From assembly GCF_039654945.1 (NCBI RefSeq), contig NW_027361696.1, positions 14,446,001 through 14,510,000 of the forward strand: DNA of 64,000 nt. The letters run 5' to 3'. Below are positions 1 through 61,100 of this stretch, one piece after another (positions within the stretch are counted from its first letter, which is position 1; each line of letters starts with the position of its first letter). The notes beneath the pieces were generated by a model. That model did no database searches, had not been told where the DNA came from, and saw nothing but the letters and a program-made list of their open reading frames with translations. The stretch is from Dendrobates tinctorius. Taxonomy: Eukaryota. The translations under genes were made by a program, and so were the position numbers.

Positions 1-1092
1 TGTATACTGTATATACACTGCATAGTACCACTCCTCCTGTCCTGTATACACACTGCACAGTACCACTCCTCCTGTCCTGTATATCTACACTGCACAATAC
101 CACTCCTCCTGTCCTGTATATATACACTGCACAGTACCACTTCTCCTGTCCTGTATATATACACTGCACAGTATCACTCCTCCTGTATATATACACTGCA
201 CAGTACCACTTCTTCTGTCCTGTATACTGTATATACACTGCACAGTACCACTCCTCCTGTCCTGTATATATACACTGCACAGTACCACTCCTCCTGACCT
301 GTATATATACACTGCACAGTACCACTCCTCCTGTCCTATATACTGTATATACACTGCATAGTACCACTCCTCCTGTCCTGTATATCTACACTGCACAATA
401 CCACTCCTCCTGTCCTGTATATATACACTGCACAGTACCACTCCTCCTGTATATATACACTGCACAGTACCACTTCCTGTCCTGTATACTGTATATACAC
501 TGCACAGTACCATTCCTCCTGTCCTGTATATATACACTGCACAGTACCACTCCTCCTGTCCTGTATATATACATTGCACAGTACCACTCCTCCTGTCCTG
601 TATATATACATTGCACAGTACCACTCCTCCTGTCCTGTATATATACATTGCACAGTACCACTCCTCCTGTCCTGTATATATACATTGCACAGTACCACTC
701 CTCCTGTCCTGTATATATACACTGCACAATACCACTCCTCCTGTCCTGTATATATACACTGCACAGTACCACTCCTCCTGTCCTGTATATATACACTGCA
801 CAGTACCATTCCTCCTGTCCTGTATATACACTGCACAGTACCACTCCTTCTGTCCTGTATACTGTATATACTGCACAGTACCACTTCTCCTGTCATGTGT
901 ATATATACACTGCACAGTACCACTTCTCCTGTCCTTTATATATACACTGCACAGTACCACTTCTCCTGTCCTGTATATATACACTGCACAGTACCACTCC
1001 TCCTGTATATATACACTGCACAGTACCACTTATCCTGTCTTGTATACTGTATATACACTGCACAGTATCACTCCTCCTGTCCTGTATACATA

Positions 1093-2309
1093 CAAATTGA
1101 AATTCAAAGAAGCTTTATTGGCAGGACTAAATACACATTAGTTTTGCCAAAGCAAGTGCACAAAAGGGAGTAGGGATAGGGACTGTAGGGATGTTGGGAA
1201 GGGGCTGTAGGAAAGGTGGGTGGGGGCAGATCCAGGATGGGGGCTATAGAAGTCCATGGCATAGTGAAGGTGGATGGCGGCATGGGGCAGATCCAGGGTA
1301 GGGGCCATAGATGTCCATGGCATATCATAGTTCTCTTTCTCGCAGTCTATGGCATTCGCTCACATATTGCGCTGCTATCTCCACTGCTCTCTCTTCTTCC
1401 CCCAGCAGGATATATGTTTTCTCTTCCTCCTTCATGGTGATGAAATCCGGGAAGAGTTGTGAGAGTCTCCTGAAGTGAGTGTCCCTCACTGCTGAGTATT
1501 TGGAGCAGTGTAGCAGGAAGTGGGTCTCATCCTCCAGGGCCTCCTGGTCACAGTGTTGGCACAGTCTTTCCTCCCTGGGCTTGTAGCTCTGCCTGTGTCG
1601 GCCGACCTCGATGGCCAGACTGTGGGCACTGAGTTTATATCGGCTCAGGATCTTGCGGTCTCTGGGTCCGGGAGTTTCTCCAGATATGGGGCCAGTCTGT
1701 AGTCTCTGGTACATGGTCAGTTTCTGTGAGCTGATGATGTTGTTCTTCCAGTCACTTACGTACCTCTCCTGGCCTTCGTCTACCATCTTCCTGATTCCGA
1801 CTTTTGTCAGGTTGTTGTGATTGGTGTTCTGATCAGGTTGGGTTTGGGTGGGCTGTTCCGAGGGTCCTGGTTTTTCTGTTTCCCCTACATGTGTCAGGGC
1901 TTTTATGGTGATGGGATCTTGGATTGCTCCTACGTAGGTGAGCCCGGAATGACAGTGCCCTCTTTAGAACCGTTAGGTGTAGAGGGAATCTGCCCAGTTC
2001 GGCCCGGAAAGCACTGTTGGAGGTGCTCCGATGGACTTGGAGAAGGTGCTTGCAGAATTCCAGGTGGAATATTTCTGTTGGGCTGGAATCCCACCTTGAC
2101 CAGTCTGAGTAGGTGTGAGGGCCCCAGACTTCGCTGCCATACAGGAGGATTGGGGCGATGATAGAGTCAAAGATTTTTAACCAGACCCTCACTGGTGGCT
2201 TCAGATGGTAGAGTTTCCTTCGGATGGCATAGAAGGTTTTGCTGGCCTTGTCTTTCAGGGTCTCTATGGCTTGTTTGAAGCTCCCTGACCGTTGAATCTC
2301 TACGCCCAA
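1093..2309 (-). mobile_element. 5'-truncated CR1/L2-group non-LTR retrotransposon (ORF2 C-terminus + 3' UTR), copy 1
   Basis: Translation includes KIFDSIIAPILLYGSEVWG, RAELGRFPL and REERLCQHC..EDETHFLLHCSKY; AATAAA plus a TTGAA-type tail at the left end. Confidence 0.85.
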
Positions 2310-3791
2310 CACTGCACAGTACCACTCCTCCTGTCCTGTGTATATATACACTGCACAGTACCACTTCTCCTGTCCTGTATATATACACTGCATGGTACCA
2401 TTCCTCCTGTCCTGTATATATACACTGCACGGTACCACTCCTCCTGTCCTGTATATATACTGCACAGTAACACTCCTCCTGTCCTGTATATATACACTGC
2501 ACAGTACCACTTCTCCTGTCCTGTATATATACACTGCACTGTACCACTCCTCCTGTCCTGTATATATACACTGCACTGTACCACTCCTCCTGTCCTGTAT
2601 ATATACACTGCACTGTACCACTCCTCCTGTCCTGTATATATACACTGCACAGTACCACTCCTCCTGTCCTGTATATATACACTGCACAGTACCACTCCTC
2701 CTGCCTGTATATATATACTGCACAGTATCACTCCTCCTGTCCTGTATATATACAATGCACAGTACCACCCCTCCTGTATATATACACTGCACAGCACCAC
2801 TTCTCCTGTCCTGTATATATACACTGCACAGTACCACTCCTTTTGTCATGTATATATACACTGCACAGTACCACCCCTCCTGTCCTGTATATATACACTG
2901 CACAGTACCACTTCTCCTGTCATGTATATATACACTGCACAGTACCACTCCTCCTGTCCTGTCTATATACACTGCACAGTACCACTCCTCCTGTCCTGTC
3001 TATATACACTGCACAGTACCACTCCTCCTGTCCTGTATACTGTATATACACTGCACAGTATCACTCCTCCTGTCCTGTATATATACACTGCACAATACCA
3101 CTCCTCCTGTCCTGTATATATACACTGCACAGTACCACTCCTCCTGTATATATACACTGCACAGTACCACTTCCTGTCCTGTATACTGTCTATACACTGC
3201 ACAGTACCATTCCTCCTGTCCTGTATATATACACTGCACAGTACCACTCCTCCTGTCCTGTATATATACATTGCACAGTACCACTCCTCCTGTCCTGTAT
3301 ATATACATTGCACAGTACCACTCCTCCTGTCCTGTATATATACATTGCACAGTACCACTCCTCCTGTCCTGTATATATACACTGCACAATACCACTCCTC
3401 CTGTCCTGTATATATACACTGCACAGTACCACTCCTCCTGTCCTGTATATATACACTGCACAGTACCACTCCTCCTGTCCTGTATATACACTGCACAGTA
3501 CCACTCCTTCTGTCCTGTATACTGTATATACTGCACAGTACCACTTCTCCTGTCATGTGTATATATACACTGCACAGTACCACTCCTCCTGTCCTGTGCA
3601 TATACACTGCACAGTACCACTTCTCCTGTCCTTTATATATATACACTGCACAGTACCACTTCTCCTGTCCTGTATATATACACTGCACAGTACCACTCCT
3701 CCTGTATATATACACTGCACAGTACCACTTCTCCTGTCCTGTATGCTGTATATACACTGCACAGTACCACTCCTCCTGTCCTGTATACATA

Positions 3792-5007
3792 CAAATTGAA
3801 ATTCAAAGAAGCTTTATTGGCAGGACTAAATACACATTAGTTTTGCCAAAGCAAGTGTACAAAAGGGAGTAGGGATAGGGACTGTAGGGATGTTGGGAAG
3901 GGGCTGTAGGAAAGGTGGGTGGGGGCAGATCCAGGATGGGGGCTATAGAAGTCCATGGCATAGTGAAGGTGGATGGCGGCATGGGGCAGATCCAGGGTAG
4001 GGGCCATAGATGTCCATGGCATATCATAGTTCTCTTTCTCGCAGTCTATGGCATTCGCTCACATATTGCGCTGCTATCTCCACTGCTCTCTCTTCTTCCC
4101 CCAGCAGGATATATGTTTTCTCTTCCTCCTTCATGGTGATGAAATCCGGGAAGAGTTGTGAGAGTCTCCTGAAGTGAGTGTCCCTCACTGCTGAGTATTT
4201 GGAGCAGTGTAGCAGGAAGTGGGTCTCATCCTCCAGGGCCTCCTGGTCACAGTGTTGGCACAGTCTTTCCTCCCTGGGCTTGTAGCTCTGCCTGTGTCGG
4301 CCGACCTCGATGGCCAGACTGTGGGCACCGAGTCTATACCGGCTCAGGATCTTGCGGTCTCTGGGTCCGGGAGTTTCTCCATATATGGGGCCAGTCTGTA
4401 GTCTCTGGTACATGGTCAGTTTCTGTGAGCTGATGATGTTGTTCTTCCAGTCACTTACGTACCTCTCCTGGCCTTCGTCTACCATCTTCCTGATTCCGAC
4501 TTTTGTCAGGTTGTTGTGATTGGTGTTCTGATCAGGTTGGGTTTGGGTGGGCTGTTCCGAGGGTCCTGGTTTTTCTGTTTCCCCTACATGTGTCAGGGCT
4601 TTATGGTGATGGGATCTTGGATTGCTCCTACGTAGGTGAGCCCGGAATGACAGTGCCCTCTTTAGAACCGTTAGGTGTAGAGGGAATCTGCCCAGCTCGG
4701 CCCGGAAAGCACTGTTGGAGGTGCTCCGATGGACTTGGAGAAGGTGCTTGCAGAATTCCAGGTGGAATATTTCTGTTGGGCTGGAATCCCACCTTGACCA
4801 GTCTGAGTAGGTGTGAGGGCCCCAGACTTCGCTGCCATACAGGAGGATTGGGGCGATGATAGAGTCAAAGATTTTTAACCAGACCCTCACTGGTGGCTTC
4901 AGATGGTAGAGTTTCCTTCGGATGGCATAGAAGGTTTTGCTGGCCTTGTCTTTCAGGGTCTCTATGGCTTGTTTGAAGCTCCCTGACCGTTAAATCTCTA
5001 CGCCCAA
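3792..5007 (-). mobile_element. 5'-truncated CR1/L2-group non-LTR retrotransposon, copy 2 (tandem duplicate of copy 1)
   Basis: Near-identical to 1093-2309 at an offset of about 2699 bp, with the same junctions; ORF 4024-4890. Confidence 0.85.
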
Positions 5008-5624
5008 CACTGCACAGTACCACTCCTCCTGTCCTGTGTATATATACACTGCACAGTACCACTTCTCCTGTCCTGTATATATACACTGCACAGTACCACT
5101 CCTCCTGTTCTGTATATATACACTGCACAGTACCACTCCTCCTGTTCTGTATATATACACTGCACAGTACCACTTCCCTGACCTGTATATATACACTGCA
5201 CAGTACCACTCCTCCTGTCCTGTATATATACACTGCACAGTACCACTCCTCCTGTTCTGTATATATACACTGCACAGTACCACTTCCCTGACCTGTATAT
5301 ATACACTGCACAGTACCATTCCTCCTGTCCTGTATATATACACTGCACAGTACCATTCCTCCTGTCCTGTATATATACACTAAACAGTACCACTCCTCCT
5401 GTTCTGTATATATACACTGCACAGTACCACTTCCCTGACCTGTGTATATACACTGCACGGTACCACTCCTCCTGTATATACACACTGCACAGTACCACTT
5501 CCCTGACCTGTATATATACACTGCACAGTACCACTTCTCCTGTCCAGTATATATACACTGCACAGTACCACTCCTCCTGTCCTGTATATATACACTGCAC
5601 AGTACCACTTCTCCTGTCCTATAT

Positions 5625-6066
5625 ATAGAATCATAGAATCGTAGAGTTGGAAGGGACCTCCTGGGCCATCTGGTCCAACCCCCTGCTCAAAGCAGGATTC
5701 GCTAAATCATCCCAGTCAGATGTCTGTCCAGCCTCTGTTTGAAGACTTCCATTGAAGGAGAACTCACCACTTCTCGTGGCAGCCTGTTCCACTCATTGAT
5801 CACTCTAACTGTCAAAAAGTTTTTTCTAATATCTAATCTGTGTCTCCTCCCATTCAGTTTCATCCCATTGCTTCTAGTCTTTCCTTGTGCAAATGAGAAT
5901 AAAGTTGATCCTTCTACAATGTGACAGCCCTTTAGATATTTGTAGACAGCTATTAAGTCTCCTCTCAGTCTTCTCTTTTGCAAACTAAATATTCCCAAAT
6001 CCTGCAACCTTTCCTCATAAGACAGGGTTTGCAGACCGGTCACCATTCTGGTCGCTCTTTTCTGAA
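5625..6066 (-). mobile_element. CR1 LINE 3' fragment
   Basis: QKRATRMV..YEERL..SLQKRRLRGDLI..FLTVRVINEWNRLP is typical of the CR1 ORF2 end; classic CR1 3' UTR/tail (ATAGAATCATAGAATC..GTTGGAAGGGACC on +). Confidence 0.92.
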
Positions 6067-6982
6067 AGATATATATACAGTATATACTGCACAGTACTAC
6101 TCCTTCTGTCCTGTATATACACACTGCACAGTACCACTCCTCCTGTCCTGTATATATACACTGCACAGTACCACTCCTCCTGTCCTGTATATATACACTG
6201 TACAGTACCACTCCTCCTGTCCTGTATATATACACTGCACAGTACCACTCCTCCTGCCCTGTATATGTACACTGCACAGTACTACTCCTCCTGTCCTGTA
6301 TATGTACACTGCACAGTACCACTCCTCCTGTCCTGTATATATACACTGCACAGTACTACTACTCCTGTCCTGTATATATACACTGTACAGTACTACTACT
6401 CCTATCCTGTATATATACACTGCACAGTACCACTCCTCCTGTCCTGTATATATACACTGCACAGTACTACTCCTGTCTTGTATATATACACTGCACAGTA
6501 TCACTTCTCCTGTCCTGTATATATACACTGCACAGTACCACTCCTCCTGTCCTGTATATATACACTGTACAGTACTACTACTCCTATCCTGTATATATAC
6601 ACTGCACAGTACCACTCCTCCTGTCCTGTATATATACACTGCACAGTACTACTCCTGTCTTGTATATATACACTGCACAGTATCACTTCTCCTGTCCTGT
6701 ATATATACACTGCACAGTACCACTCCTCCTGTCCTGTATATATACACTGCACAGTACCACTTCCCTGACCTGTATATTTACACTGCACAGTACCACTTCT
6801 CCTGTCTAGTATATATACACTGCACAGTACCACTCCTCCTGTCCTGTATATATACACTGCACAGTACCACTCCTCCTGTCCTGTATATATACACTGCACA
6901 GTACCACTCCTCCTGTCCTGTATATATACACTGCACAGTACCACTTCCTTTCTTCTGGATATATGAGATTTATTTCTCTCAC

Positions 6983-7091
6983 CAATCGTTGTTTTCCCAT
7001 CTTTGAAGAAGTTTCCACGATGCTGGGCTCGATAATACTCCGTACATGGGATGTATATTGGATCTTCATCTTCGTCATCTTCCTCTCCATA
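6983..7091 (-). CDS. Anoctamin-7-like second coding exon, YGEEDDEDEDPIYIPCTEYYRAQHRGNFFKDGKTTI(D)
   Basis: Acceptor ccttgttctgtgtgcag|TAT after a 76-bp phase-0 intron; donor G|GTGAGA. FFKDGKTTI-D matches the anoctamin N-terminal F.DG...ID(F/Y)VL motif. Confidence 0.75.
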
Positions 7092-7167
7092 CTGCACACA
7101 GAACAAGGGGTGATATACTGCTCTACGCCCTTCCACTCACCCATCACATATATATATATATACTTAC

Positions 7168-7293
7168 ATATCCGCGACCTCCGTCATGGGCGGGTCCCGG
7201 GGACTCGCCTAGTATTTCTCCTCCCTCTGTCTCCAGATCAACCAGTGAGCTGGTGTCCAAGTCCGACCAGTCCGAAAGCTTCCTCCGAAACAT
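7168..7293 (-). CDS. Anoctamin-7-like (ANO7L1/ano11-type) first coding exon, MFRRKLSDWSDLDTSSLVDLETEGGEILGESPGPAHDGGRGY
   Basis: ATG at 7293; donor TAT|GTAAGT at 7167; candidate acceptor CAG at 7311-7313. Resembles the ANO7 N-terminus as I recall it (MLRRRAQEEDSTVLID). Synteny with CPLANE2 and FBXO42. Confidence 0.7.
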
Positions 7294-7364
7294 GTCTGCT
7301 GTTCTGCTGCCTGCCCCGGATATAGAGACCGGAGGAACAAGAGAGGTCAGGACGAGCACGAAAT

Positions 7365-10300
7365 ACGGAGGGGCCCTGTTACGGTGCAGTATGGAGGGGC
7401 CCTGTGACCAATGAAGTACGGAGGGGTCCTGTGACCGGTGCAGTATATAGGGGCCTTGTGACCGATGCAGTATATAGGGGCCCTGTGACCGGTGCAGTAT
7501 ATAGGGGCCCTGTGACCGGCGCAGTGTGGAGGGGCCCTGTGACCGGTGCAGTATGGAGGGGCCCTGTGACCGGTGCAGTATGGAGGGGCCCTGTGACCGG
7601 TGCAGTATGGAGGGGCCCTGTGACCAATGAAGTACGGAGGGGCCTTGTGACCGGTGCAGTATATAGGGGCCCTGCGACCGGTGCAGTAGGGAGGGGCCCT
7701 GTGACCGATGCAGTATATAGGGGCCCTGTGACCACTGCAGTACGGAGGGGCCCTGTGACCGATGCAGTAGGGAGGGGCCCTGTGACCGGTGCAGTATAGA
7801 GGGGCCCTGTGACCGGTGCAGTATAGAGGGGCCCTGTGACCGATGCAGTATAGAGGGGCCCTGTGACCGGTGCAGTATAGAGGGTCCCTTTGACCGATGC
7901 AGTATGGAGGGTCCCTTTGACCGGTGCAGTATGGAGGAGCCCTGTGACTGCTGCAGCATGGAGGGGCCCTGTGACCGGTGCAGTATAGAGGGGCCCTGTG
8001 ACCGCTGCAGTATGGAGGGGCCCTGTGACCGCTGCAGTATGGAGGGGCCCTGTGACCGCTGCAGTATAGAGGGTCCCTGTGACCGCTGCAGTATGGAGGG
8101 GCCCTGTGACCGATGCAGTATGGAGGGGCCCTGTGACCGATGCAGTATGGAGGGGCCCTGTGACCGATGCAGTATGGAGGGGCCCTGTGACCGATGCAGT
8201 ATGGAGGGGCCCTGTGACCGATGCAGTATGGAGGGGCCCTGTGACCGATGCAGTATGGAGGGGCCCTGTGACCGATGCAGTATGGAGGGGCCCTGTGACC
8301 GATGCAGTATGGAGGGGCCCTGTGACCGATGCAGTATGGAGGGGCCCTGTGACCGATGCAGTATGGAGGGGCCCTGTGACCGATGCAGTATGGAGGGGCC
8401 CTGTGACCGATGCAGTATGGAGGGGCCCTGTGACCGATGCAGTATGGAGGGGCCCTGTGACCGATGCAGTATGGAGGGGCCCTGTGACCGATGCAGTATG
8501 GAGGGGCCCTGTGACCGATGCAGTATGGAGGGGCTCTGTGACCGATGCAGTATGGAGGGGCCCTGTGACCGATGCAGTATGGAGGGGCCCTGTGACCGAT
8601 GCAGTATAGAGGGTCCCTGTGACCGATGCAGTATAGAGGGTCCCTGTGACCGGTGCAGTATTGAGGGGCCCTGTGACCGGTGCACTATAGAGGGGCCCTG
8701 TGACCGCTGCAGTTTAGAGGGTCCCTTTGACTGGTGCAGTATAGAGGGTCCCTTTGACCGATGCAGTATGGAGGGGCCCTGTGACCGATGCAGTATAGAG
8801 GGGCCCTGTGACCGGTGCAGTACAGAGGGGCCCTGTGACCGATGCAGTACAGAGGGGCCCTGTGACCGGTGCAGTATGGAGGGGCCCTGTGACCGATGCA
8901 GTATGGAGGGGCCCTGTGACCGATGCAGTATGGAGGAGCCCTGTGACCGATGCAGTACGGAGAGGCCCTGTGACCGATGCAGTACGGAGCAGGGCTGTGG
9001 AGTCGGTAAGCCAAACCTGCGACTCCGACTCCTCAATTTCCCTTACACCGACTCCGACTCCAACTCCGACTCCGACTCCACGACTCCGACTCCCACACAT
9101 ATTGCTTATATTTAAGTGAAAAATGTATTGTAGTACAATGTGAACCTCAGACATTTAATCATTTTTATGATCCCATAATCAAGATATTTAGATAGAACAG
9201 AATATATATTGGTGTACTACCCGGTTTTCATTCTTTTTGGTACAGATACGATATGGATAGACAGATATGGATAAATGGATAGATAGAGCAGATTTCTAAT
9301 CTGCTTTTGCTATTGAAAACATTATCTATGAGCTCAAAAACCTTTCAGGTGATGCGGTTTTTTAAATAGATGATCAGCTTTTGCAGCTGAAAAACGTATC
9401 CTCAAAAAACACAGGAAAAACGCTGTGTGTGAATGTAGCCTTAGATCTGGAATATAACAGCCATTTATAGGACATTTCATAACTTTCCCAAATTCCTATA
9501 AAAAAATATTCAGCACATCCTGCATTGAACTACTGTACCCAATTTATTATATATTTTAGGAGTCGGAGTCGGTCCATTTTATACCGACTCCAACTCCACC
9601 AAAATGAGCACCGACTCCGACTCCACGGCTCCGACTCCACAGCCCTGGTACGGAGGGGCCCTGTGACCGGTGCAGTATGGAGGGGCCCTGTGACCGATGC
9701 AGTATATAGGGGCACTGTGACCGGTGCAGTACAGAGGGGCCCTGTGACCGATGCAGTATATAGGGGCCCTGTGACCGGTGCAGTATGGAGGGGCCCTGTG
9801 ACCGATGCAGTATAGAGGGGCCCTGTGACCGGTGCAGTATAGAGGGGCCCTGTGACCGGTGCAGTATAGAGGGGCCCTGTGACCGGTGCAGTACAGAGGG
9901 GCCCTGTGACCGATGCAGTACAGAGGGGCCCTGTGACCGATGCAGTACAGAGGGGCCCTGTGACCGATGCAGTATAGAGGGGCCCTGTGACCGATGCAGT
10001 ATAGAGGGGCCCTGTGACCGGTGCAGTATGGAGGGGCCCTGTGACCGGTGCAGTATGGAGGGGCCCTGTGACAGGTGCTGTATAGAGGGGCCCTGTGACA
10101 GGTGCTGTATAGAGGGGCCCTGTGACAGGTGCTGTATAGAGGGGCCCTGTGACCGATGCAGTATGGAGGGGCCCTGTGACCGATGCAGTATAGAGGGGCC
10201 CTGTGACAGGTGCTGTATAGAGGGGCCCTGTGACCGATGCAGTACAGAGGGGCCCTGTGACCGATGCAGTATAGAGGGGCCCTGTGACCGGTGCAGTATA

Positions 10301-11195
10301 GAGGGGCCCTGTGACCGGTGCAGTATAGAGGGGCCCTGTGACCGGTGCAGTATAGAGGGGCCCTGTGACCGGTGCAGTACGGAGGGGCCCTGTGACCGGT
10401 GCAGTACGGAGGGGCCCTGTGACCGGTGCAGTACGGAGGGGCCCTGTGACCGGTGCAGTACGGAGGGGCCCTGTGACCGGTGCAGTACGGAGGGGCCCTG
10501 TGACCGGTGCAGTACGGAGGGGCCCTGTGACCGGTGCAGTACGGAGGGGCCCTGTGACCGGTGCAGTACGGAGGGGCCCTGTGACCGGTGCAGTACGGAG
10601 GGGCCCTGTGACCGGTGCAGTACGGAGGGGCCCTGTGACCGGTGCAGTACGGAGGGGCCCTGTGACCGGTGCAGTACGGAGGAGCCCTGTGACCGATGCA
10701 GTATGGAGGGGCCCTGTGACCGATGCAGTATGGAGGGGCCCTGTGACCGGTGCAGTACGGAGGGGCCCTGTGACAGGTGCTGTATGGAGGGGCCCTGTGA
10801 CCGGTGCAGTATAGAGGGGCCCTGTGACAGGTGCTGTATAGAGGGGCCCTGTGACCGGTGCAGTATATAGGGGCCCTGTGACCGGTGCAGTATGGAGGGG
10901 CCCTGTGACAGGTGCTGTATATAGGGGCCCTGTGACCGGTGCAGTATGGAGGGGCCCTGTGACCGGTGCAGTATATAGGGGCCCTGTGACCAGTGCAGTA
11001 TGGAGGGGCCCTGTGACCGGTGCAGTACGGAGGGGCCCTGTGACCGGTGCAGTATGGAGGGGCCCTGTGACCGATGCAGTATGGAGGGGCCCTGTGACAG
11101 GTGCTGTATGGAGGGGCCCTGTGACCGATGCAGTATGGAGGGGCCCTGTGACAGGTGCTGTATAGAGGGGCCCTGTGACCGGTGCAGTATAGAGG
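7365..11195. repeat. 27-bp minisatellite (GATGCAGTATGGAGGGGCCCTGTGACC), split by a hAT MITE
   Basis: Direct tandem repeat; gives 9-aa repeat ORFs (RCSMEGPCD / SQGPSILHR). Confidence 0.97.
8990..9647. mobile_element. Non-autonomous hAT transposon (MITE)
   Basis: 17-bp TIR CAGGGCTGTGGAGTCGG / CCGACTCCACAGCCCTG; 8-bp TSD GTACGGAG (8982-8989 and 9648-9655); subterminal GGAGTC repeats. Confidence 0.92.
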
Positions 11196-11275
11196 AGAGA
11201 CTGACGCTATAGGTGCTGCTGGTAATTGGCACTGGGCGTTGAGGGTGCGGGGAGACAGCAGCGGCGTCCTCTCAC

Positions 11276-11420
11276 CTGAGCTCCGGCATTGATGGGTGTG
11301 AGATGCGGCAATCCTGTCTCAAGGGAAAGCTGAGGAGGAGGAGAAAACAGTGCGGAGACTGAGAGGCCATCACCTCCTCCCCGCAGCACACAGGATGCTG
11401 AGCTACATGTACCACCCCAG
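11276..11420 (-). other. Possible 5' UTR exon of the ANO7-like gene
   Basis: Unique island between two satellites with a strong donor CAG|GTGAGA on the minus strand at 11276/11275; the 5' boundary is uncertain. Confidence 0.3.
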
Positions 11421-11475
11421 CATGTGCACACTGTATCCAAGCCTATCATGTGAGTGATTCCATCTGCGGATCCGC

Positions 11476-14400
11476 GTATCTAATCCTGTCCTGTGTGATA
11501 CTGACTGCTGAGCCATGTATCTAATCCTATCCTGTGTGATACTAACTGCTGAGCCGTGTATCTAATCCTATCCTGTGTGATACTAACTGCTGAGCCGTGT
11601 ATCTCATCCTATCCTGTGTGATACTGACTGCTGAGCCGTGTATCTAATCCTATCCTGTGTGATATTAACTGCTGAGCCGTGTATCTAATCCTATCCTGTG
11701 TGATACTAACTGCTGAGCCGTGTATCTAATCCTATCCTGTGTGATATTAACTGCTGAGCCGTGTATCTAATCCTATCCTGTGTGATACTGACTGCTGAGC
11801 CATGTATCTAATCCTATCCTGTGTGATACTAACTGCTGAGCCGTGTATCTAATCCTATCCTGTGTGATTAACTGCTGAGCCGTGTATCTCATCCTATCCT
11901 GTGTGATACTGACTGCTGAGCCGTGTATCTAATCCTATCCTGTGTGATATTAACTGCTGAGCCGTGTATCTAATCCTATCCTGTGTGATACTAACTGCTG
12001 AGCCGTGTATCTCATCCTATCCTGTGTGATACTAACTGCTGAGCCGTGTATCTCATCCTATCCTGTGTGATACTGTCTGCTGAGCCGTGTATCTAATCCT
12101 CTCCTATGTAATACTGACTGCTGAGCCGTGTATCTAATCCTATCCTGTGTGATACTGTCTGCTGAGCCGTGTGATACTGACTGCTGAGCCGTGTATCTAA
12201 TCCTCTCCTGTGTGATACTGACTGCTGAGCTGTGTATCTAATCCTATCCTGTGTGTTACTGTCTGCTGGGCCATGTATCTAATCCTCTCCTGTGTGATAC
12301 TGTCGGCTGAGCTGTGTATCTCATCCTATCCTGTGTGATACTGTCTGCTGAGCCGTGTATCTAATCCTATCCTGTGTGATACTGACTGCTGAGCTGTGTA
12401 TCTAATCGTATCCTGTGTGATACTGACTGCTGAGCTGTGTATCTACTCCTATCCTGTGTGATACTGTCTGCTGGGCCATGTATCTAATCCTCTCCTGTGT
12501 GATACTGTCGGCTGAGCTGTGTATCTCATCCTATCCTGTGTGATACTGTCTGCTGAGCCATGTATCTAATCCTCTCCTGTGTGATACTGTCTGCTGAGCT
12601 GTGTATCTAATCCTATCCTGTGTGATACTGACTGCTGAGCCATGTATCTAATCCTCTCCTGTGTGATACTGACTGCTGAGCCGTATATCTTATCCTATCC
12701 TGTGTGATACTGTCTGCTGAGCCGTGTATGTAATCCTATCCTGTGTGCTGTGCACTGTATCTAATCCTATTGTGTGATACTGTGTATCTAATCCTCTCCT
12801 GTGTGATAGTCTGCTTAGCTGTGTATCTAATCTTATCATGTGTGATCCTGTCTGCCATGTATCTAATCCCATACTGTGTGATACTGACTGCTGAGCCGTG
12901 TATCTAATCCTCTCCTGTGTGATACTGGCTGCTGAGACATGTATCTAATCCTCTCCTATGTGATACTGACTGCTGACCTGTGTATCTAATCCTATCCTGT
13001 GTGATACTGTCTGCTGAGCCGTGTATCTAATCCTCTCCTATGTGATACTGACTGCTGAGCCGTGTATCTAATCCTCTCCTATGTGATACTGACTGCTGAC
13101 CTGTGTATCTAATGCTATCCTGTGTGATACTGTCTACTGAGCCATGTATCTAATCCTATCCTATGTGATACTGACTGCTGAGCCGTGTATCTAATCCTCT
13201 CCTATGTGATACTGACTGCTGACCTGTGTATCTAATCCTATCCTGTGTGATACTGTCTGCTGAGCCGTGTACCTAATCCTCTCCTATGTGATACTGACTG
13301 CTGAGCCGTGTATCTAATCCTCTCCTATGTGATACTGACTGCTGACCTGTGTATCTAATCCTATCCTGTGTGATACTGACTGCTGAGCCGTGTATCTAAT
13401 CCTCTCCTATGTGATACTGACTGCTACCTATGTATCTAATGCTATCCTGTGTGATACTGTCTGCTGAGCCATGTATCTAATGCTATCCTGTGTGATACTG
13501 TCTACTGAGCCATGTATCTAATTCTATCCTGTGTGATACTGTCTGCTGAGCCGTGTATCTAATCCTCTCCTATGTGATACTGACTGCTGAGCCATGTATC
13601 TAATCCCATACTGTGTGATACTGACTTCTGAGCCGTGTATCTAATCCTATCCTGTGTGATACTGACTGCTGAGCCGTGTATCTAATCCTCTCCTGTGTGA
13701 TACTGTCTGCTGAGCCTTGTATCTAATCCTCTCCTGTGTGATACTGACTGCTGAGCCGTGTATCTAATCCTCTCCTTTGTGATACTGACTGCTGACCTGT
13801 GTATCTAATCCTATCCTGTGTGATACTGTCTGCTGAGCCGTGTATCTAATCCTCTCCTATGTGATACTGACTGCTGAGCCGTGTATCTAATCCTATCCTG
13901 TGTGATACTGTCTGCTGAGCCATGTATCTAATCCTCTCCTATGTGATACTGACTGCTGACCTGTGAATCTAATCCTATCCTGTGTGATACTGTCTGCTGA
14001 GCCGTGTACCTAATCCTCTCCTATGTGATACTGACTGCTGAGCCGTGTATCTAATCCTATCCTGTGTGATACTGACTGCTGAGCCGTGTATCTAATCCTC
14101 TCCTATGTGATACTGACTGCTGACCTGTGTATCTAATGCTATCCTGTGTGATACTGTCTACTGAGCCATGTATCTAATCCTATCCTGTGTGATACTAACT
14201 GCTGAGCCGTGTATCTAATCCTATCCTGTGTGATACTAACTGCTGAGCCGTGTATCTCATCCTATCCTGTGTGATACTGTCTGCCGAGCCGTGTATCTAA
14301 TCCTCTCCTATGTAATACTGACTGCTGAGCCGTGTATCTAATCCTATCCTGTGTGATACTGTCTGCTGAGCCGTGTATCTAATCCTATCCTGTGTGATAC

Positions 14401-17120
14401 TGACTGCTGAGCCGTGTATCTAATCCTCTCCTGTGTGATACTGACTGCTGAGCTGTGTATCTAATCCTATCCTGTGTGTTACTGTCTGCTGGGCCATGTA
14501 TCTAATCCTCTCCTGTGTGATACTGTCGGCTGAGCTGTGTATCTCATCCTATCCTGTGTGATACTGTCTGCTGAGCCGTGTATCTAATCCTATCCTGTGT
14601 GATACTGACTGCTGAGCTGTGTATCTAATCCTATCCTGTGTGATACTGACTGCTGAGCTGTGTATCTACTCCTATCCTGTGTGATACTGTCTGCTGGGCC
14701 ATGTATCTAATCCTCTCCTGTGTGATACTGTCGGCTGAGCTGTGTATCTCATCCTATCCTGTGTGATACTGTCTGCTGAGCCATGTATCTAATCCTCTCC
14801 TGTGTGATACTGTCTGCTGAGCTGTGTATCTAATCCTATCCTGTGTGATACTGACTGCTGAGCCATGTATCTAATCCTCTCCTGTGTGATACTGACTGCT
14901 GAGCCGTGTATGTAATCCTATCCTGTGTGCTGTGCACTGTATCTAATCCTATTGTGTGATACTGTGTATCTAATCCTTTCCTGTGTGATAGTCTGCTGAG
15001 CTGTGTATCTAATCTTATCATGTGTGATACTGTCTGCCATGTATCTAATCCCATACTGTGTGATACTGACTTCTGAGCCGTGTATCTAATCCTCTCCTGT
15101 GTGATACTGGCTGCTGAGACATGTATCTAATCCTCTCCTATGTGATACTGACTGCTGACCTGTGTATCTAATCCTATCCTGTGTGATACTGTCTGCTGAG
15201 CCGTGTATCTAATCCTCTCCTATGTGATACTGACTGCTGAGCCGTGTATCTAATCATATCTTGTGTGATACTGTCTGCTGAGCCTTGTATCTAATCCTCT
15301 CCTGTGTGATACTGACTGCTGAGCCGTGTATCTAATCCTCTCCTATGTGATACTGACTGCTGACCTGTGTATCTAATCCTATCCTGTGTGATACTGACTG
15401 CTGAGCCGTGTATCTAATCCTCTCCTATGTGATACTGACTGCTGACCTGTGTATCTAATGCTATCCTGTGTGATACTGTCTACTGAGCCATGTATCTAAT
15501 CCTATCCTATGTGATACTGACTGCTGAGCCGTGTATCTAATCCTCTCCTATGTGATACTTACTGCTGACCTGTGTATCTAATCCTATCCTGTGTGATACT
15601 GTCTGCTGAGCCATGTACCTAATCCTCTCCTATGTGATACTGACTGCTGAGCCGTGTATCTAATCCTCTCCTATGTGATACTGACTGCTGACCTGTGTAT
15701 CTAATCCTATCCTGTGTGATACTGACTTCTGAGCCGTGTATCTAATCCTCTCCTATGTGATACTGACTGCTGACCTATGTATCTAATGCTATCCTGTGTG
15801 ATACTGTCTGCTGAGCCATGTATCTAATGCTATCCTGTGTGATACTGTCTACTGAGCCATGTATCTAATTCTATCCTGTGTGATACTGTCTGCTGAGCCG
15901 TGTATCTAATCCTCTCCTATGTGATACTGACTGCTGAGCCATGTATCTAATCCCATACTGTGTGATACTGACTTCTGAGCCGTGTATCTAATCCTCTCCT
16001 GTGTGATACTGTCTGCTGAGCCTTGTATCTAATCCTCTCCTGTGTGATACTGACTGCTGAGCCGAGTATCTAATCCTCTCCTTTGTGATACTGACTGCTG
16101 ACCTGTGTATCTAATCCTATCCTGTGTGATACTGTCTGCTGAGCCGTGTATCTAATCCTCTCCTATGTGATACTGACTGCTGAGACGTGTATCTAATCCT
16201 ATCCTGTGTGATACTGTCTGCTGAGCCATGTATCTAATCCTCTCCTATGTGATACTGACTGCTGACCTGTGAATCTAATCCTATACTGTGTGATACTGTC
16301 TGCTGAGCCGTGTACCTAATCCTCTCCCATGTGATACTGACTGCTGAGCCGTGTATCTAATCCTATCCTGTGTGATACTGTCTGCTGAGCCGTGTATCTA
16401 TTCCTCTCCTGTGTGATACTGTCTGCTGAGCCGTGTATCTAATTCTCTCCTATGTGATACTGACTGCTGAGCCGTGTATCTAATCCTATCCTGTGTTATA
16501 CTGTCTGCTGAGCCTTGTATCTAATCCTCTCCTGTGTGATACTGGCTGCTGAGCTGTGTATCTAATCCTCTCCTATGTGATACTGACTGCTCACCTGTGT
16601 ATCTAATCCTATCCTGTGTGATACTGTCTGCTGAGCCGTGTATCTAATCCTATCCTATGTGATACTGACTGCTGACCTGTGTATCTAATCCTATCCTGTG
16701 TGATACCGACTGCTGAGCCGTGTATCTAATTTTCTCCTATGTGATACTGACTGCTGACCTGTGTATCTAATGCTATCCTGTGTGATACTGTCTACTGAGC
16801 CATGTATGTAATCCTATCCTATGTGATACTGACTGCTGAGCCGTGTATCTAATCCTCTCCTATGTGATACTGACTGCTGACCTGTGATTCTAATGCTATC
16901 CTGTGTGATACTGTCTACTGAGCCATGTATGTAATCCTATCCTATGTGATACTGACTGCTGAGCCGTGTATCTAATCCCCTCCTGTGTGATACTGTCTGC
17001 TGAGCTGTGTATCTAATCCTATCCTGTGTGATACTGTCTGCTGAGCCGTGTATCTAATCCTCTCCTATGTGATACTGACTGCTGACCTGTGTATCTAATC
17101 CTGTCATGTGTGATACTGTG
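11476..17120. repeat. 41-bp minisatellite (GCCGTGTATCTAATCCTATCCTGTGTGATACTGACTGCTGA) with a ~2.18-kb higher-order duplication
   Basis: Direct tandem repeat; the same irregular block occurs near 12740 and near 14920. Confidence 0.97.
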
Positions 17121-19549: not shown

Positions 19550-20266
19550 ATGATCTGCTGCCTGCTCCATATTATCGGCCTCCTCTGCGGAACCATCGGT
19601 ATGATCCTCACCTGGATCGTCACCATCATGCCTTACTGGAGGCTGGTTGTCCTGGCTGAGAACAATGACCTGGTCATTGATGGTGGCAGGATTGACGGTG
19701 AGTGGATCAGCCGCTGGGACGGGCTGTGGCTCACGTGTCTGAAGCAGTTCCGGATAAGTATGGAATGCGACAACTACGGCTCCATGGTGTCGCTCACCGC
19801 CGACCTGAAAGCTGCCCGCATCTTCATGAGTTTCGCTGTTGCCATGTCTGTCCTTGCCTTCATATTCTCCATAATCGGCTTCATTCTCACCCAGTGCTGC
19901 CGATGCGACGACAAAGACAGTGAGCGCAATTGCTTCACCCTGACCGCAGGACTCCTGTACTTTCTCAGCACCGTCCTCGTCCTCATCCCCGTCATCTGGA
20001 CTACGGTTAACATCTCGCGCCGCGCCTATGACGCTTCAATTACCAGGGGAGCAGTGCGAATCGAGATTGGCCAAGCTCTGCTGCTGGCGTGGCCCAATAT
20101 CATCTTCCTCCTGGGCGGGGGGATAATCCTGAGCTGCCTCTGCTGCTTCTGCGCAATGAGCACCTGCTGCACCAGGGAACCCTACAAACAACGGGTCGCT
20201 GCATGCAAGCCATACGCAGCCAAAGAGGAGAGAGTCAGCTGCAGTCCCCGCATGGAGTATCTATAA
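19550..20266 (+). CDS. Claudin-8/17-like tight-junction protein, single-exon, 238 aa
   Basis: Claudin signature W..GLW..C..C (MPYWR..ENN..WDGLWLTC..MEC), DLKAAR, LIPVIW, EIGQAL, four hydrophobic helices, C-terminal PDZ-type YL; context GCCATGA; ATTAAA at 20980. Confidence 0.93.
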   Translation: MICCLLHIIGLLCGTIGMILTWIVTIMPYWRLVVLAENNDLVIDGGRIDGEWISRWDGLWLTCLKQFRISMECDNYGSMVSLTADLKAARIFMSFAVAMSVLAFIFSIIGFILTQCCRCDDKDSERNCFTLTAGLLYFLSTVLVLIPVIWTTVNISRRAYDASITRGAVRIEIGQALLLAWPNIIFLLGGGIILSCLCCFCAMSTCCTREPYKQRVAACKPYAAKEERVSCSPRMEYL

Positions 20267-22144: not shown

Positions 22145-23765
<1,621 letters not shown>

Positions 23766-26700
23766 TATACAGAACAGGAGGAGTGGTACTGTGCAGTGTA
23801 TATGTACAGGACAGGAGGGGTGGTACCGTGCAGTGTATATATACAGGACAGGAGTGGTACCGTGCAGTGTATATATACAGGACAGGAGCGGTGGTACTGT
23901 GCAGTGTATAAATACAGGACAGGAGGAGTGGTACTGTGCAGTGTATATATACAGGACAGGAGGAATGGTACTGTGCAGTGTATATATACAGGGCAGGAGG
24001 AGTGGTACTGTGCAGTTTATATATACAGGACAGGAGGGGTGGTACTGTGCAGTGTATATATACAGGACAGGAGGAGTGGTACTCTGCAGTGTGTATATAT
24101 ACAGGACAGGAGGAGTGGTACCGTGCAGTGTAGAAATACAGGACAGGAGGAGTGGTACCGTACAGTGTATATATACAGGACAGGAGGAGTGGTACCGTGC
24201 AGTGTATATATACAGGACAGGAGCGGTGGTACTGTGCAGTGTATAAATACAGGACAGGAGGAGTGGTACTGTGCAGTGTATATATACAGGACAGGAGGAA
24301 TGGTACTGTGCAGTGTATATATACAGGACAGGAGGGGTGGTACTGTGCAGTGTATATATACAGGACAGGAGGAGTGGTACTGTGCAGTGTATATAAACAG
24401 GACAGGAGGAGTGGTACTGTGCAGTGCATATATACAGGACAGGAGGAGTGGTACTGTGCAGTGTATATGTACAGGACAGGAGGAGTGGTACCGTGCAGTG
24501 TATAAATACAGGAGGAGTGGTACCGTACAGTGTATATATACAGGACAGGAGGAGTGGTACCGTGCAGTGTATATATACAGGACAGGAGCGGTGGTACTGT
24601 GCAGTGTATAAATACAGGACAGGAGGAGTGGTACTGTGCAGTGTATATATACAGGACAGGAGGAGTGGTACTGTACAGTGTATATATACAGGGCAGGAGG
24701 AGTGGTACTGTACAGTGTATATATACAGGGCAGGAGGAGTGGTACTGTGCTGTGTATATATACAGGACAGGAGGAGTGGTACTGTGCAGTGTATATATAC
24801 AGGACAGGAGTGGTACTGTGCAGTGTATATATACAGGACAGGAGGAGTGGTACTGTGCTGTGTATATATACAGGACAGGAGGAGTGGTACTGTGCAGTGT
24901 GTATATACAGGACAGGAGGAGTGGTACCGTGCAATGTGTATATACAGGACAGGCGGAGTTGTACCGTGCAGTGTGTATATACAGGACAGGAGGAGTGGTA
25001 CTGTGCAGTGTATATATACAGGACAGGAGGAGTGGTACCGTGCAGTGTATATATACAGGACAGGAGGAGTGGTACCGTGCAGTGTATATGTACAGGACAG
25101 GAGGAGTGGTACCGTGCAGTGTATAAATACAGGAGGAGTGGTACCGTACAGTGTATATATACAGGACAGGAGGAGTGGTACTGTGCAGTGTATATATACA
25201 GGACAGGAGGAGTGGTACTGTGCAGTGCATATATACAGGACAGGAGGAGTGGTACTGTGCAGTGTATATGTACAGGACAGGAGGAGTGGTACCGTGCAGT
25301 GTATAAATACAGGAGGAGTGGTACCGTACAGTGTATATATACAGGACAGGAGGAGTGGTACCGTGCAGTGTATATATACAGGACAGGAGCGGTGGTACTG
25401 TGCAGTGTATAAATACAGGACAGGAGGAGTGGTACTGTGCAGTGTATATATACAGGACAGGAGGAGTGGTACTGTACAGTGTATATATACAGGGCAGGAG
25501 GAGTGGTACTGTACAGTGTATATATACAGGGCAGGAGGAGTGGTACTGTGCTGTGTATATATACAGGACAGGAGGAGTGGTACTGTGCAGTGTATATATA
25601 CAGGACAGGAGGAGTGGTACTGTGCAGTGTATATATACAGGACAGGAGGAGTGGTACTGTGCAGTGTATATATACAGGACAGGAGGAGTGGTACTGTGCA
25701 GTGTATATATACAGGACAGGAGGAGTGGTACCGTGCAGTGTGTATATACAGGACAGGAGGAGTGGTACCGTGCAATGTGTATATACAGGACAGGCGGAGT
25801 GGTACCGTGCAATGTGTATATACAGGACAGGCGGAGTGGTACCGTGCAGTGTGTATATACAGGACAGGAGGAGTGGTACTGTGCAGTGTATATATACAGG
25901 ACAGGAGGAGTGGTACCGTGCAGTGTATATATACAGGACAGGAGGAGTGGTACTGTGCAGTGTATATGTACAGGACAGGAGGAGTGGTACCGTGCAGTGT
26001 ATAAATACAGGAGGAGTGGTACCGTACAGTGTATATATACAGGACAGGAGGAGTGGTACTGTGCAGTGTATATATACAGGACAGGAGGCGTGGTACTGTA
26101 CAGTGTATATATACAGGACAGGAGGAGTGGTACTGTACAGTGTATATATACAGGGCAGGAGGAGTGGTACTGTACAGTGTATATATACAGGGCAGGAGGA
26201 GTGGTACTGTGCTGTGTATATATACAGGACAGGAGGAGTGGTACTGTGCAGTGTATATATACAGGACAGGAGGAGTGGTACTGTGCAGTGTATATATACA
26301 GGACAGGAGGAGTGGTACTGTGCTGTGTATATATACAGGACAGGAGGAGTGGTACTGTGCAGTGTATATATACAGGACAGGAGGAGTGGTACTGTGCAGT
26401 GTATATATACAGGACAGGAGGAGTGGTACTGTGCTGTGTATATATACAGGACAGGAGGAGTGGTACTGTGCAGTGTGTATATACAGGACAGGAGGAGTGG
26501 TACCGTGCAATGTGTATATACAGGACAGGCGGAGTGGTACCGTGCAGTGTGTATATACAGGACAGGAGGAGTGGTACCGTGCAGTGTATATATACAGGAC
26601 AGGAGGAGTGGTACCGTGCAGTGTATATATACAGGACAGGAGGAGTGGTACTGTGCAGTGTATATATACAGGACAGGAGGAGTGGTACCGTGCAGTGTAT

Positions 26701-26778
26701 ATATACAGGACAGGAGGAGCGGTACCGTGCAGTGTATATATACAGGACAGGAGGAGGGGTACTGTGCAGTCAGTATAT
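23766..26778. repeat. 37-bp minisatellite, same family as 1-6945 but in inverted orientation (also short remnants at 21980-22144 and 30001-30103)
   Basis: Unit TACAGGACAGGAGGAGTGGTACTGTGCAGTGTATATA is the reverse complement of the left array. Confidence 0.97.
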
Positions 26779-26779
26779 A

Positions 26780-28050
26780 CAGTGGGTACGGAAAGTCAGA
26801 TCCCTTTAAATTTTCCACTCTTTGTTTCACTGGAGCCATTTGGTAAATTCAAAAAAATGCATATTTTTTCTCATTAATGCACACTCTGCGCTCCATCTTT
26901 ACTGAAAAAAACCACAAATGTAGACATTTTTCAAATTTATTTAAAAAAAAAACCTAAAATATCACATGGTCATACAGTAAGTATTGAGACCCTATACTCA
27001 GTATTGAGTAGAAGCACCCTTTTGAGCTAGTACATTCATGAGTCTTCTTGGGAATGATGCAACAAGTTTTTCACACCTGGATTTGGGAATCCTCTACCAT
27101 TCTTCCTTGCAGATCCTCTCCAGTTCCATCAGTTTGGATGGTGAATGTTGGTGGACAGCCACTTTCAGGTCTCTCCAGAAATGCTCAATTGGGTTTAGGT
27201 CAGGGCTCTGGCTGGGCCAGTCAAGAATGGTCACAGACTTGTTCTGAAGACATTCCTTTCTTATTTTAGCTGTGTGCTTAGGGTCATTGTCTTGTTAGAA
27301 GGTGAACCTTCAGCCAAGTCTGAGGTCCAAAGCACTCTGGAAGAGGTTTTCATCCAGGATATCTCTGTATTTGGCCGCATTCATGTTTCCTTCAATTGCA
27401 ACCAGTTGTCCTGTCCCTGCAGCTGAAAAACACTCCATAGCATGATGCTGCCACCACCATGTTTCACTGTTGGGATTGTATTGGGCAGGTGATGAGCAGT
27501 GCCTGTTTTTCTCCACACATACCGCTTAGAATTATCACCAAAAAGTTCTATCTTCATCTCATCAGACCAGAGAATCTTATTTCTCATAGTCTGGGAGTCC
27601 TTCATGTGTTTTTTAGCAAACTCTATGCGGGCTTTCATGTCTTGCACTGAGGAGAGGCTTCCGTCGGGCCACTCTGCCATAAAGGCCCGACTGGTGGAGG
27701 GCTGCAGTGTTAGTTGACTTTGTGGAACTTTCTCCCATCTCCCTACTGCATCTCTGGAGCTCAGCCACAGTGATCTTGGGGTTCTTCTTTAACTCTCTCA
27801 CCAAGGCTCTTCTCCCACGATTGCTCAGTTTGGCTGGATGGCCAGGTCTAGGAAGACTTCTGGTGGTCCCAAACTTCTTCCATTTAAGGATTATGGAGGC
27901 CACTGTGCTCTTAGGAATCTTGAGTACTGCAGAAATTATTTTGTAACCTTGGCCAGATGTGTGCCTTGCCACAATTCTGTCTCTGAGCTCCTTGGCCAGT
28001 TCCTTTGACCTCATGATTCTCATTTGGTCTGACATGCACTGTGAGCTGTT
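26780..28050 (-). mobile_element. Tc1 element, transposase pseudogene, one end lost
   Basis: TA+CAGT terminus; ORFs with MRSKELAKELRDRIV..GRVARRKPLL, WSDEMKIELFG and KHGGGSIM, frameshifted. Confidence 0.92.
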
Positions 28051-32113: not shown

Positions 32114-32693
32114 AATGTGAAAATTATACCTGAAACCAGATAAAAAGGGGAGAAGTTGCCTCAATCTTTGCATTATGTGTCTGTGTGCCACACTAAACTT
32201 GGAGAACAGAAAGAAGAGAGAACTGTCTGAGGACTTGAGAACCAAAATTGTTGAACAATGTCACCAATCCCAAAGTTACGATTCCATCTCCAGAGATCTT
32301 GATATTCGTTTGTTCACGGTGCACAACATAATCAAGAAGTTTACAACCCATGGCACAGTAGCCAAGCTCCCAGGATGTGAACGGCAGAGAATAATTCATG
32401 AAAAAGTTCCAACGTTGGTTATTCTGGATGGTGTATAAGCCCCAATCAAGAAATTCCAGCTGTCCTGCAGACTCAGGGTGCATCAGTGTCAGCGCAAACT
32501 ACCCGTTCACACGTGAATTAAATGAAACACTATAGCAGGAGACCCAGGAGGACCCCACTGCTGACACAGAAACAAAAAAGCTAGGATTCAGTTTGCCAAT
32601 ATGTACTTAAGTAAGCCCAAATCCTTCTGGTAAAGTGTCTTGTGGACAGGGGAGACCAAGATAGAGCTTTTTGGTAAAGCATATTATTCTACT

Positions 32694-35600: not shown

Positions 35601-36104
35601 TAACCATGACATACAAAGCCATCCACAACCTGTCTCCTCCATACACCTGTGACCTCGTCTCCCGGTACTTTCCTGCACGCAACCTCCAATCCTCACAAGA
35701 TCTCCTTCCCTACTCCCCTCTTATCTCCTCTTCCCACAATCGCATACAAGATTTCTCTAGCGCATCACCCCTACTCTGGAACTCTCTACCACAACATATC
35801 AGACTCTCACATCCTACCATCAAAACCTTCAAAAAGAGCCTGAAGACCCACCTCTTCCGACAAGCCTATAACCTGCAGTAACCACCGATCGACCAAACCG
35901 CTGCACGACCAGCTCCACCCTCGCCTACTGTATTATCACCCATCCCTTGTAGATTGTGAGCCCTCGCGGGCAGGGTCCTCTCTCCTCCTGTACCAGTTAT
36001 GACTTGTATTGTTTAACATTATTGTACTTGTTTTTATTATGTATACCCCTCCTTACATGTAAAGCGCCATGGAATAAATGGCGCTATAACAATAAATAAT
36101 AATA
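32694..36104 (+). mobile_element. L2 LINE with near-complete, frameshifted ORF2 (2A-like peptide, APE, RT)
   Basis: GDISPNPGP; WNARS, ITETWL and MGDFN (APE); GVPQGSVLG and YADDTQIY (RT); LVHALIISRLDYCN; (AAT)n tail; TSD ATTCTACT (32686-32693 and 36105-36112). Confidence 0.95.
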
Positions 36105-39789: not shown

Positions 39790-40076
39790 CTGAGGGCAAA
39801 CGTGACATTGATAGATTAGGATCAATCGGAACAAGCTAAGCTGCACTGTAAAGCACAGAGGAGGAACAGACCAATGCCCAGGGCCTCTAATAAAGCAGAA
39901 GGTGAATTTCAAACTTTAGAGATGGCCCAAAAATGCACACTCGAGACAACTGAGCACACATGTTTTGTCAGTGGGGACAGGGGAGTGCGAGATCCCTCTG
40001 ACCCACCCAGGTTCTCACCAGAGACAGCGATGATAGAGTCCCTGATCCATCACTTTCTGTATAGTGCAGACCTCAC

Positions 40077-40229
40077 CTGTGGTCTCATGGTGCATGGGGG
40101 TCACCTCCAGTCCGCAGAGTTTAGCAACCAGGGACGTCTTTCCGACACCACTTTTCCCAGAGACGAAGATTTTGTAGCTGGCGACATCAGCGGGAAACTG
40201 TGGGGGAAGAACCGGTCGCTCGATCAGCC
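40077..40229 (-). CDS. CPLANE2: CPLANE2 exon 2 (P-loop)
   Basis: (G)LIERPVLPP..YKIFVSGKSGVGKTSLVAKLCGLEV..HHETT; AG/GT boundaries. Confidence 0.95.
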
Positions 40230-40294
40230 CTGTGCAAATACACGAATCACAACGGTGTCACCAAAAGAAAAACACAAGGGCCAGCAGGGGGCAG

Positions 40295-54105: not shown

Positions 54106-54519
<414 letters not shown>

Positions 54520-60924: not shown

Positions 60925-61100
60925 TTAGGGCTAGGGATAGAATTAGGGTTAGGGTTAGGGTTGGAATTAGGGTTAGGGCTAGGATTAGGGCTAGGGTTAG
61001 AATTAGCGTTAGGGCGAATTAGGATTAGGGTTAGGATTAGGGTTGGGATTAGGGTTAGCATTGGGATTAGGGTTACGGGTGTGTTGGGGTTAGGGTTGGT
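60925..61100 (+). repeat. Degenerate (TTAGGG)n-like tract
   Basis: TTAGGG, TTAGGA, CTAGGG and TTGGGA hexamers. Confidence 0.85.

Follow-up and report, generated by a model that had tools for sequence, protein, structure and literature searches.

The window analysed here is a stretch of 64,000 nucleotides from Dendrobates tinctorius (contig NW_027361696.1, positions 14,446,001 to 14,510,000) that contains no runs of N. Two short coding exons lie near its left end on the minus strand. They are contained in a unique island of 421 bp (6946-7366), the only stretch free of repeats between the 37-mer array at 5007-6945 and the 27-mer array at 7367-11195. Recognisable parts of the genes CPLANE2 and FBXO42 are situated further upstream with respect to these exons. 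The principal features are as follows.

1..6982, minus strand: first part of the next intron, made up of 37-mer arrays and two LINE 3' tails, with no anoctamin exon
10-1094, 2309-3793 and 5007-6945: 37-mer satellite arrays
1095-2308 and 3794-5006: LINE 3' tails, 99.3% identical; reverse-transcriptase end with an HCxxC motif
6983..7091, minus strand: second coding exon, YGEEDDEDEDPIYIPCTEYYRAQHRGNFFKDGKTTI and one base of an Asp codon; donor GTGAGA
7092..7167, minus strand: 76-bp GT-AG intron, missing from RNA contigs
7168..7310, minus strand: ATG exon, 17-nt leader plus 42 codons (MFRRKLSDWSDLDTSSLVDLE...GRGY); donor GTAAGT
7311..11275, minus strand: intron 1, 3965 bp, almost wholly 27-mer satellite (7367-11195)
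11276..11378, minus strand: non-coding 5' exon; 3' end exact, 5' end set by the furthest reach of the RNA contigs
19550-20266, plus strand: intact single-exon claudin-family ORF of 238 aa (PF00822, E 2.8e-13), between CPLANE2 and the anoctamin
40018-40257, minus strand: P-loop exon of CPLANE2 (match to 7q3e_D, E 6.9e-21)
45095-46126, minus strand: probable last coding exon of FBXO42, judged by the C-terminus of the protein; no Pfam match
54106-54486, minus strand: first (F-box) coding exon of FBXO42 (match to 9o04_C, E 2.7e-20)

Read on the minus strand, the start codon at 7293 opens a stretch of 42 codons (126 nt, 7293..7168). The intron that follows (7167..7092) is in phase 0, contains a (TA)n run and ends in TGTGTGCAG, and the next exon (7091..6983, 109 nt) stops one base into a codon, in phase 1. 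At its 5' side the ATG exon is bounded by an acceptor at 7311/7310 (ggggcag/GCAGCAG) that is preceded by a pyrimidine-rich tract. Spliced translation yields a 78-residue peptide (MFRRKLSDWSDLDTSSLVDLE...NFFKDGKTTI), which the second coding exon carries just into the start of the anoctamin dimerisation domain. The window shows only 235 coding nucleotides of the anoctamin.

An earlier note, made from the sequence alone, had described the ATG, the 42-codon exon, the 76-bp intron and the 109-bp exon within an island of some 400 bp between two satellites. These elements are base-exact in the minus-strand sequence, the island corresponds to 6946-7366, and the in-frame peptide given in that note is the translation obtained here. 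The right-hand limit that it set, 7310, proves to be a real acceptor, but a further, non-coding exon lies ahead of the ATG exon. The exons had also been called hidden. This is accurate for the mechanical ORF list, in which both are buried within long repeat ORFs, but not for RefSeq, where anoctamin-7 models from sister genera begin with exactly these exons. Short real exons can be recognised by reading satellite-dominated frog sequence of the kind in which such a list conceals them.

Sequence of the island was found in 20 public sequencing runs. In each of ten that share one organism label, 41% of the sampled words occurred, which is approximately the share expected if the exons alone were present. 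Contigs from four public runs with three organism labels were then aligned on the island. In every one of the four runs, a single contig covers 6983-7091 and 7174-7313 with six record letters between the two pieces. These letters correspond to 7168-7173, which the alignment skipped as a (TA) repeat, and because exactly six letters separate the pieces, the 76-nt intron is absent from the contigs. That the runs are RNA is no more than a guess from their labels; transcription of the locus is shown by the intron-less form of the contigs and not by these labels. The junction at 7168/7091, which the earlier note had proposed as a check, is therefore found spliced in contigs from all four runs. The short exons are genuine, transcribed and correctly spliced, with an agreement far beyond chance.

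The contig of organism D (1471 nt) is 100% identical to the window and extends 1116 nt past 6983. On the coding strand, the contig letters past 6983 read AC TTT GTT CTT GTT TGG GAG GAG AAA CTT, which together with the dangling G of the 109-nt exon give D-FVLVWEEKL. A phase-1 exon starting with (D)FVL had been predicted from the window, and it is present in the RNA contigs in this form, although it lies past the left window edge. No anoctamin exon was found among the unique islands of the window left of 6983. The islands at 1095-2308 and 3794-5006 were considered as the next exon and rejected, being LINE 3' tails. In Ranitomeya variabilis the next coding exon lies 9 kb downstream of the 109-nt exon, which accounts for the lack of anything but satellite and LINE tails in the 6982 bp to the left of this exon.

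In the other direction, the contigs extend 70-100 nt beyond 7313, where their letters disagree with the window. A 30-mer from this portion has a unique match at 11279-11308 on the minus strand, with 0 matches expected by chance, and identifies the non-coding 5' exon. At 11276 this exon ends in ...GGAGCTCAG/GTGAGAGG, that is CAG/GTGAGA, with the donor GTGAGA at 11275. The array that fills most of intron 1 comprises 141 copies with a period of 27 according to TRF. The leader contains two out-of-frame upstream ATGs (11370-11372 and 11289-11291, minus strand), which read through 7310-7215 as uORFs of 55 codons (ATG 11370) and 28 codons (ATG 11289). Both uORFs extend across the main start codon, and translation from it may be reduced as a result. 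The ATG at 7293 is the sole in-frame ATG after an in-frame TAG stop that follows the second in-frame ATG of the leader. In R. variabilis the 5' exon, its donor and both upstream ATGs are conserved, the latter at ~7553 and ~7634 of the corresponding locus (L006).

A 41-mer satellite (11432-17118) is located just upstream of the 5' exon. The R. variabilis locus carries this satellite and the 27-mer of intron 1 in the same places (5956-7493 and ~7700-9949 of L006) at ~88-91% identity and, being common to two genera at the same positions, they are therefore old and stable neighbours of the promoter. The left end of the window (10-6945) is organised as a higher-order repeat of ~2.7 kb, consisting of the 37-mer satellite and a LINE 3' tail, and the same 37-mer recurs in inverted orientation at 23766-26782. 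Between the claudin ORF and CPLANE2 there are Tc1/mariner-type transposase ORFs and a series of LINE endonuclease/reverse-transcriptase ORFs (22495-23097, plus strand; 27613-28035, minus strand; 32640-35881, plus strand), all recognised by eye only. An interstitial run of ~29 degenerate TTAGGG telomere-type repeats is present at 60925-61097.

The 78-aa peptide alone has no match in Pfam or the PDB. When it was run with HMMER against 1.84 billion representatives, the sole match was a repeat of a bacterial group-1 glycosyltransferase, which carries four copies of 'SPGPDFDGGRY' and was judged to be a chance match. Extension by the ten residues from the RNA contigs gives an 88-aa peptide, whose sole Pfam match is PF16178 (Anoct_dimer) at profile positions 1-18 of 221 (E 0.0017). 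A 36-aa piece matches the same positions (E 0.00031). These matches require the ten contig residues, and they score 18.8 and 21.1 bits against a gathering cut-off of 22. The 88-aa peptide has no PDB match, and a search of NCBIfam likewise gave no match.

Identification comes from comparison with full-length proteins. The homologue search was made with a 630-aa ORF (7147-9036, minus strand) that ends in the exon peptide, and only residues 582-623 were scored. Over these 42 residues, four frog proteins of ~900 aa, all containing PF04547 and PF16178, match at 71-81% identity (E 2.4e-10 to 3e-7): anoctamin-7 of Dendropsophus ebraccatus, anoctamin-7-like of Discoglossus pictus and of Gastrophryne carolinensis, and anoctamin-7 X1 of Aquarana catesbeiana. 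The N-termini of all four are colinear with the window peptide and continue into IDFVLVWEEK. Over the 88-aa peptide, the best member of the cluster is anoctamin-7 isoform X1 of R. variabilis (XP_077116501.1, 94% identity, with five residue changes in the 78), followed by Phyllobates terribilis, which represents a different genus (XP_073512235.1, 93%), and Anomaloglossus baeobatrachus (91%). These matches assign the window to a dendrobatoid poison frog. An alignment of 20 vertebrates, from lamprey to frog, shows colinear N-termini with an invariant NxFxDxxxxxD core. This colinear identity with full-length proteins that bear both PF04547 and PF16178 places the peptide in the anoctamin family, as the earlier note had proposed. 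We consider it very probable, with a probability of roughly 0.93, that the exons are the 5' end of a conserved ANO7-type (TMEM16G-type) anoctamin gene, encoded on the minus strand in the slot of the human ANO7L1. The gene is already known, being annotated as anoctamin-7 in sister genera, and its novelty is low.

The differences from the window that are listed for the contig of organism B (six) and for that of organism A (one) are all synonymous changes at third positions. Compared with R. variabilis, the 78 codons show 13 synonymous and five non-synonymous changes (pS ~0.25, pN ~0.027, pN/pS ~0.11). To judge from these substitutions, the exons in the window are under purifying selection. The visible part of the gene is short, its leader has overlapping uORFs and its surroundings are dense in satellites and LINE fragments, all of which might be expected of an expressed pseudogene, transcribed and with intact 5' exons but decaying in this species. 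It is highly unlikely that this is the case, as R. variabilis, with a full-length gene model of 901 aa, has the uORFs and satellites too, and as the differences listed among three organism labels are all synonymous, with the low pN/pS ratio extending to another genus. The 1116 nt of RNA contig downstream of the last visible exon also argue against a decaying gene. We infer that the anoctamin exons beyond the left edge of the window, those for the transmembrane part included, are intact.

In the transcript, the non-coding exon (ending at 11276) is spliced over the 3965-bp satellite intron to the ATG exon (7310-7168), and from there across the 76-bp intron to the 109-nt exon (7091-6983) and on to the off-window exon that begins (D)FVLVWEEKL. 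The 78 residues would make up an acidic tail at the cytosolic N-terminus, followed by the opening strand of the N-terminal cytosolic (dimerisation) domain, and the full protein would be a ten-helix TMEM16 of ~900 aa. The tail begins with a few basic residues and continues through an acidic tract and a conserved DPIYIPC motif to the first dimerisation strand, NFFKDGKTxIDFVLVWEE, whose N, F, D and D do not vary among the 20 vertebrates. The R. variabilis orthologue retains the residues aligned to N651, E654, E702, E705, N730, E734 and D738 of mouse ANO1, which we take from the TMEM16A structures to be the calcium ligands of helices 6-8. Since this orthologue aligns with ANO1 and ANO6 and keeps the ligands, the product is most likely a calcium-gated TMEM16 dimer, a prediction made from orthologues; a role as scramblase or channel would be assigned by family only.

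The genomic context points to the same gene. CPLANE2 and FBXO42 are both upstream of the frog anoctamin on the same strand, with the claudin-like ORF intercalated, in keeping with the order FBXO42-CPLANE2-ANO7L1 that the earlier note gave for human 1p36.13. In Sorex araneus (shrew), Macrotis lagotis (bilby), Anolis carolinensis (anole) and Callorhinchus milii (elephant shark), the gene directly upstream of the anoctamin encodes a Ras/Roc protein of ~260 aa and has the same orientation, so that the adjacency recurs in all four; in Sorex araneus this gene was identified as CPLANE2 by tblastn. A RhoGEF gene is present downstream of the anoctamin in bilby and elephant shark; an ARHGEF19 on that side of the frog gene would fall outside the window. 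The upstream neighbour in Takifugu, within 10 kb, is PLEKHM2 and not CPLANE2. We place human ANO7L1, presumably, between CPLANE2 and ARHGEF19. In cattle the order is FBXO42-CPLANE2-ARHGEF19 (PMC10804543), and ARHGEF19 and ANO7L1 are listed together elsewhere (PMC12689003). The presence of CPLANE2 and FBXO42 upstream, and the CPLANE2-anoctamin(-RhoGEF) adjacency in other vertebrates, support a positional equivalence of the frog gene to human ANO7L1, given the presumed human placement.

CPLANE2 is apparently fused to the anoctamin in four alligator models (P0172, P0175, P0168 and P0174; 1149-1159 aa), so that CPLANE2 proteins of 260 aa fall into one 90% cluster with them. The fusion looks like an annotation artefact, and it also attests to the adjacency of the two genes in crocodilians. 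Sorex araneus and Macrotis lagotis possess an apparently intact anoctamin adjoining CPLANE2, whereas in humans its counterpart is listed as a pseudogene, which suggests repeated independent losses in eutherians. In the literature searched, ANO7L1 occurs in four papers and ANO7P1 in one, always within gene lists, and the evolutionary origin of ANO7L1 is not discussed.

The extent of the wider clade was assessed by a full-length search with the Dendropsophus protein, in which the best 120 matches were considered. These show 64-87% identity, with the exception of one fused Gambusia model at 48%, and span hagfish, lamprey, sharks, ray-finned fishes, coelacanth, lungfish and all three orders of amphibians, as well as squamates, turtles and crocodilians. 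Birds, primates and rodents are absent among them. The only mammals within the best 120 are two marsupials, one shrew and one tree shrew; the shrew and one marsupial belong here by their CPLANE2 locus and the tree shrew by sequence only, and both Dromiciops entries derive from a single gene, as isoforms. Ordinary mammalian ANO7 proteins are numerous in databases, yet none appears within the best 120. By sequence, the frog gene is thus placed closest to the CPLANE2-adjacent ANO7-type lineage of mammals. Where a family name is given among the best 120, it is anoctamin-7, anoctamin-7-like or Anoctamin, the others being unnamed or hypothetical, and ANO11/TMEM16L is not among these names. The earlier note had proposed a functional amphibian orthologue of an 'ano11-like' TMEM16 paralogue that humans have lost. 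The gene is indeed ANO7-type, expressed and under purifying selection, but the 'ano11-like' label is unfit, because in the one paper found to use the name, TMEM16L (ANO11) denotes an invertebrate subfamily said to have been lost in vertebrates (bioRxiv 10.1101/2022.04.22.489151).

Because ordinary mammalian ANO7 scores below the best 120, mammals carry, or once carried, two ANO7-type lineages. The explanation to which we give somewhat better than even odds is that the frog gene is the sole ANO7-type gene of the frog and occupies the ancestral locus, while mammalian ANO7 (2q37.3) would be a relocated, faster-evolving duplicate whose counterpart at the ancestral locus decayed to ANO7L1 in humans. 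The CPLANE2-adjacent position is already found in the elephant shark, the identity of 64-87% across the best 120 holds with lamprey and hagfish included, and the RefSeq name anoctamin-7 is in use in many taxa. Birds, in which an intact ANO7 is lacking, are reported to retain mere traces of such a gene and to have nine anoctamins altogether (PMC6679542). The Takifugu gene, which adjoins PLEKHM2, speaks against this explanation in so far as the locus is not fixed in every lineage.

Alternatively, ANO7L1 could represent an ancient lineage apart from ANO7, in which case frogs would have two ANO7-type genes and an '11th anoctamin' would have been lost in humans. The suffix '-like' in many RefSeq names of the clade would fit this proposal, as would the scarcity of mammals in the best 120, with the shrew and one marsupial at the CPLANE2 locus, and the lower score of ordinary mammalian ANO7 from which two mammalian lineages were deduced. 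We regard it as rather doubtful. Plain 'anoctamin-7' is the name used in Ranitomeya, Phyllobates, Bufo, Rana, Anolis, alligator, sharks and most fish, a single ANO7-type gene in sauropsids is the simpler account of the mere traces of ANO7 in birds, and a survey of the anoctamin family in 2010 recognised ten vertebrate subfamilies (PMC2974728). Given that RefSeq naming is inconsistent and that birds reportedly have ANO7 traces only, we incline to the view that non-mammals have a single ANO7-type gene. The broader proposition, that the CPLANE2-adjacent anoctamin is either the ancestral ANO7 locus or an eleventh lineage and was lost in humans, apparently in most other eutherians, and in birds, stands in our estimation at an even chance. 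If it is true, the much-studied prostate protein ANO7 would represent a derived copy that evolves faster, while the function of the conserved one would be unstudied; the CPLANE2-adjacent copy would survive in marsupials and at least one eutherian (the shrew by locus, the tree shrew by sequence).

Among proteins of known structure, mouse ANO1 (5oyb/5nl2, 6bgi) and ANO6 (6p46) align with the full-length frog orthologue along the complete anoctamin domain, at E 5e-182 and 5e-170. Both are members of other subfamilies, and neither has a counterpart of the N-terminal tail that the window encodes; a structure of ANO7 proper was not found in the PDB. Mammalian ANO7/TMEM16G (NGEP) is of the same subfamily as the frog gene by name and by best database matches, and its N-terminus follows the same logic, with a short basic start, an acidic tract and IDFVLVWEE leading into the dimerisation domain. 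Its locus, which we take to be 2q37.3 in humans, is unlike the CPLANE2-side position of the frog gene. The closest correspondence is with R. variabilis, in which the locus likewise comprises a 5'UTR exon, the same start codon, a 126-nt exon, a short intron and a 109-nt exon. The short intron is 76 bp in the window and 88 bp in R. variabilis, and the satellite intron measures 4.0 kb and ~2.2 kb, respectively. Human ANO7L1 would occupy the same slot as the frog gene, on the downstream side of CPLANE2 and FBXO42. Expression, splicing and purifying selection, the last on the substitution counts, distinguish the frog gene from ANO7L1, which is catalogued as a pseudogene. The anoctamin beside CPLANE2 is very strongly conserved across vertebrates and yet a pseudogene in humans.
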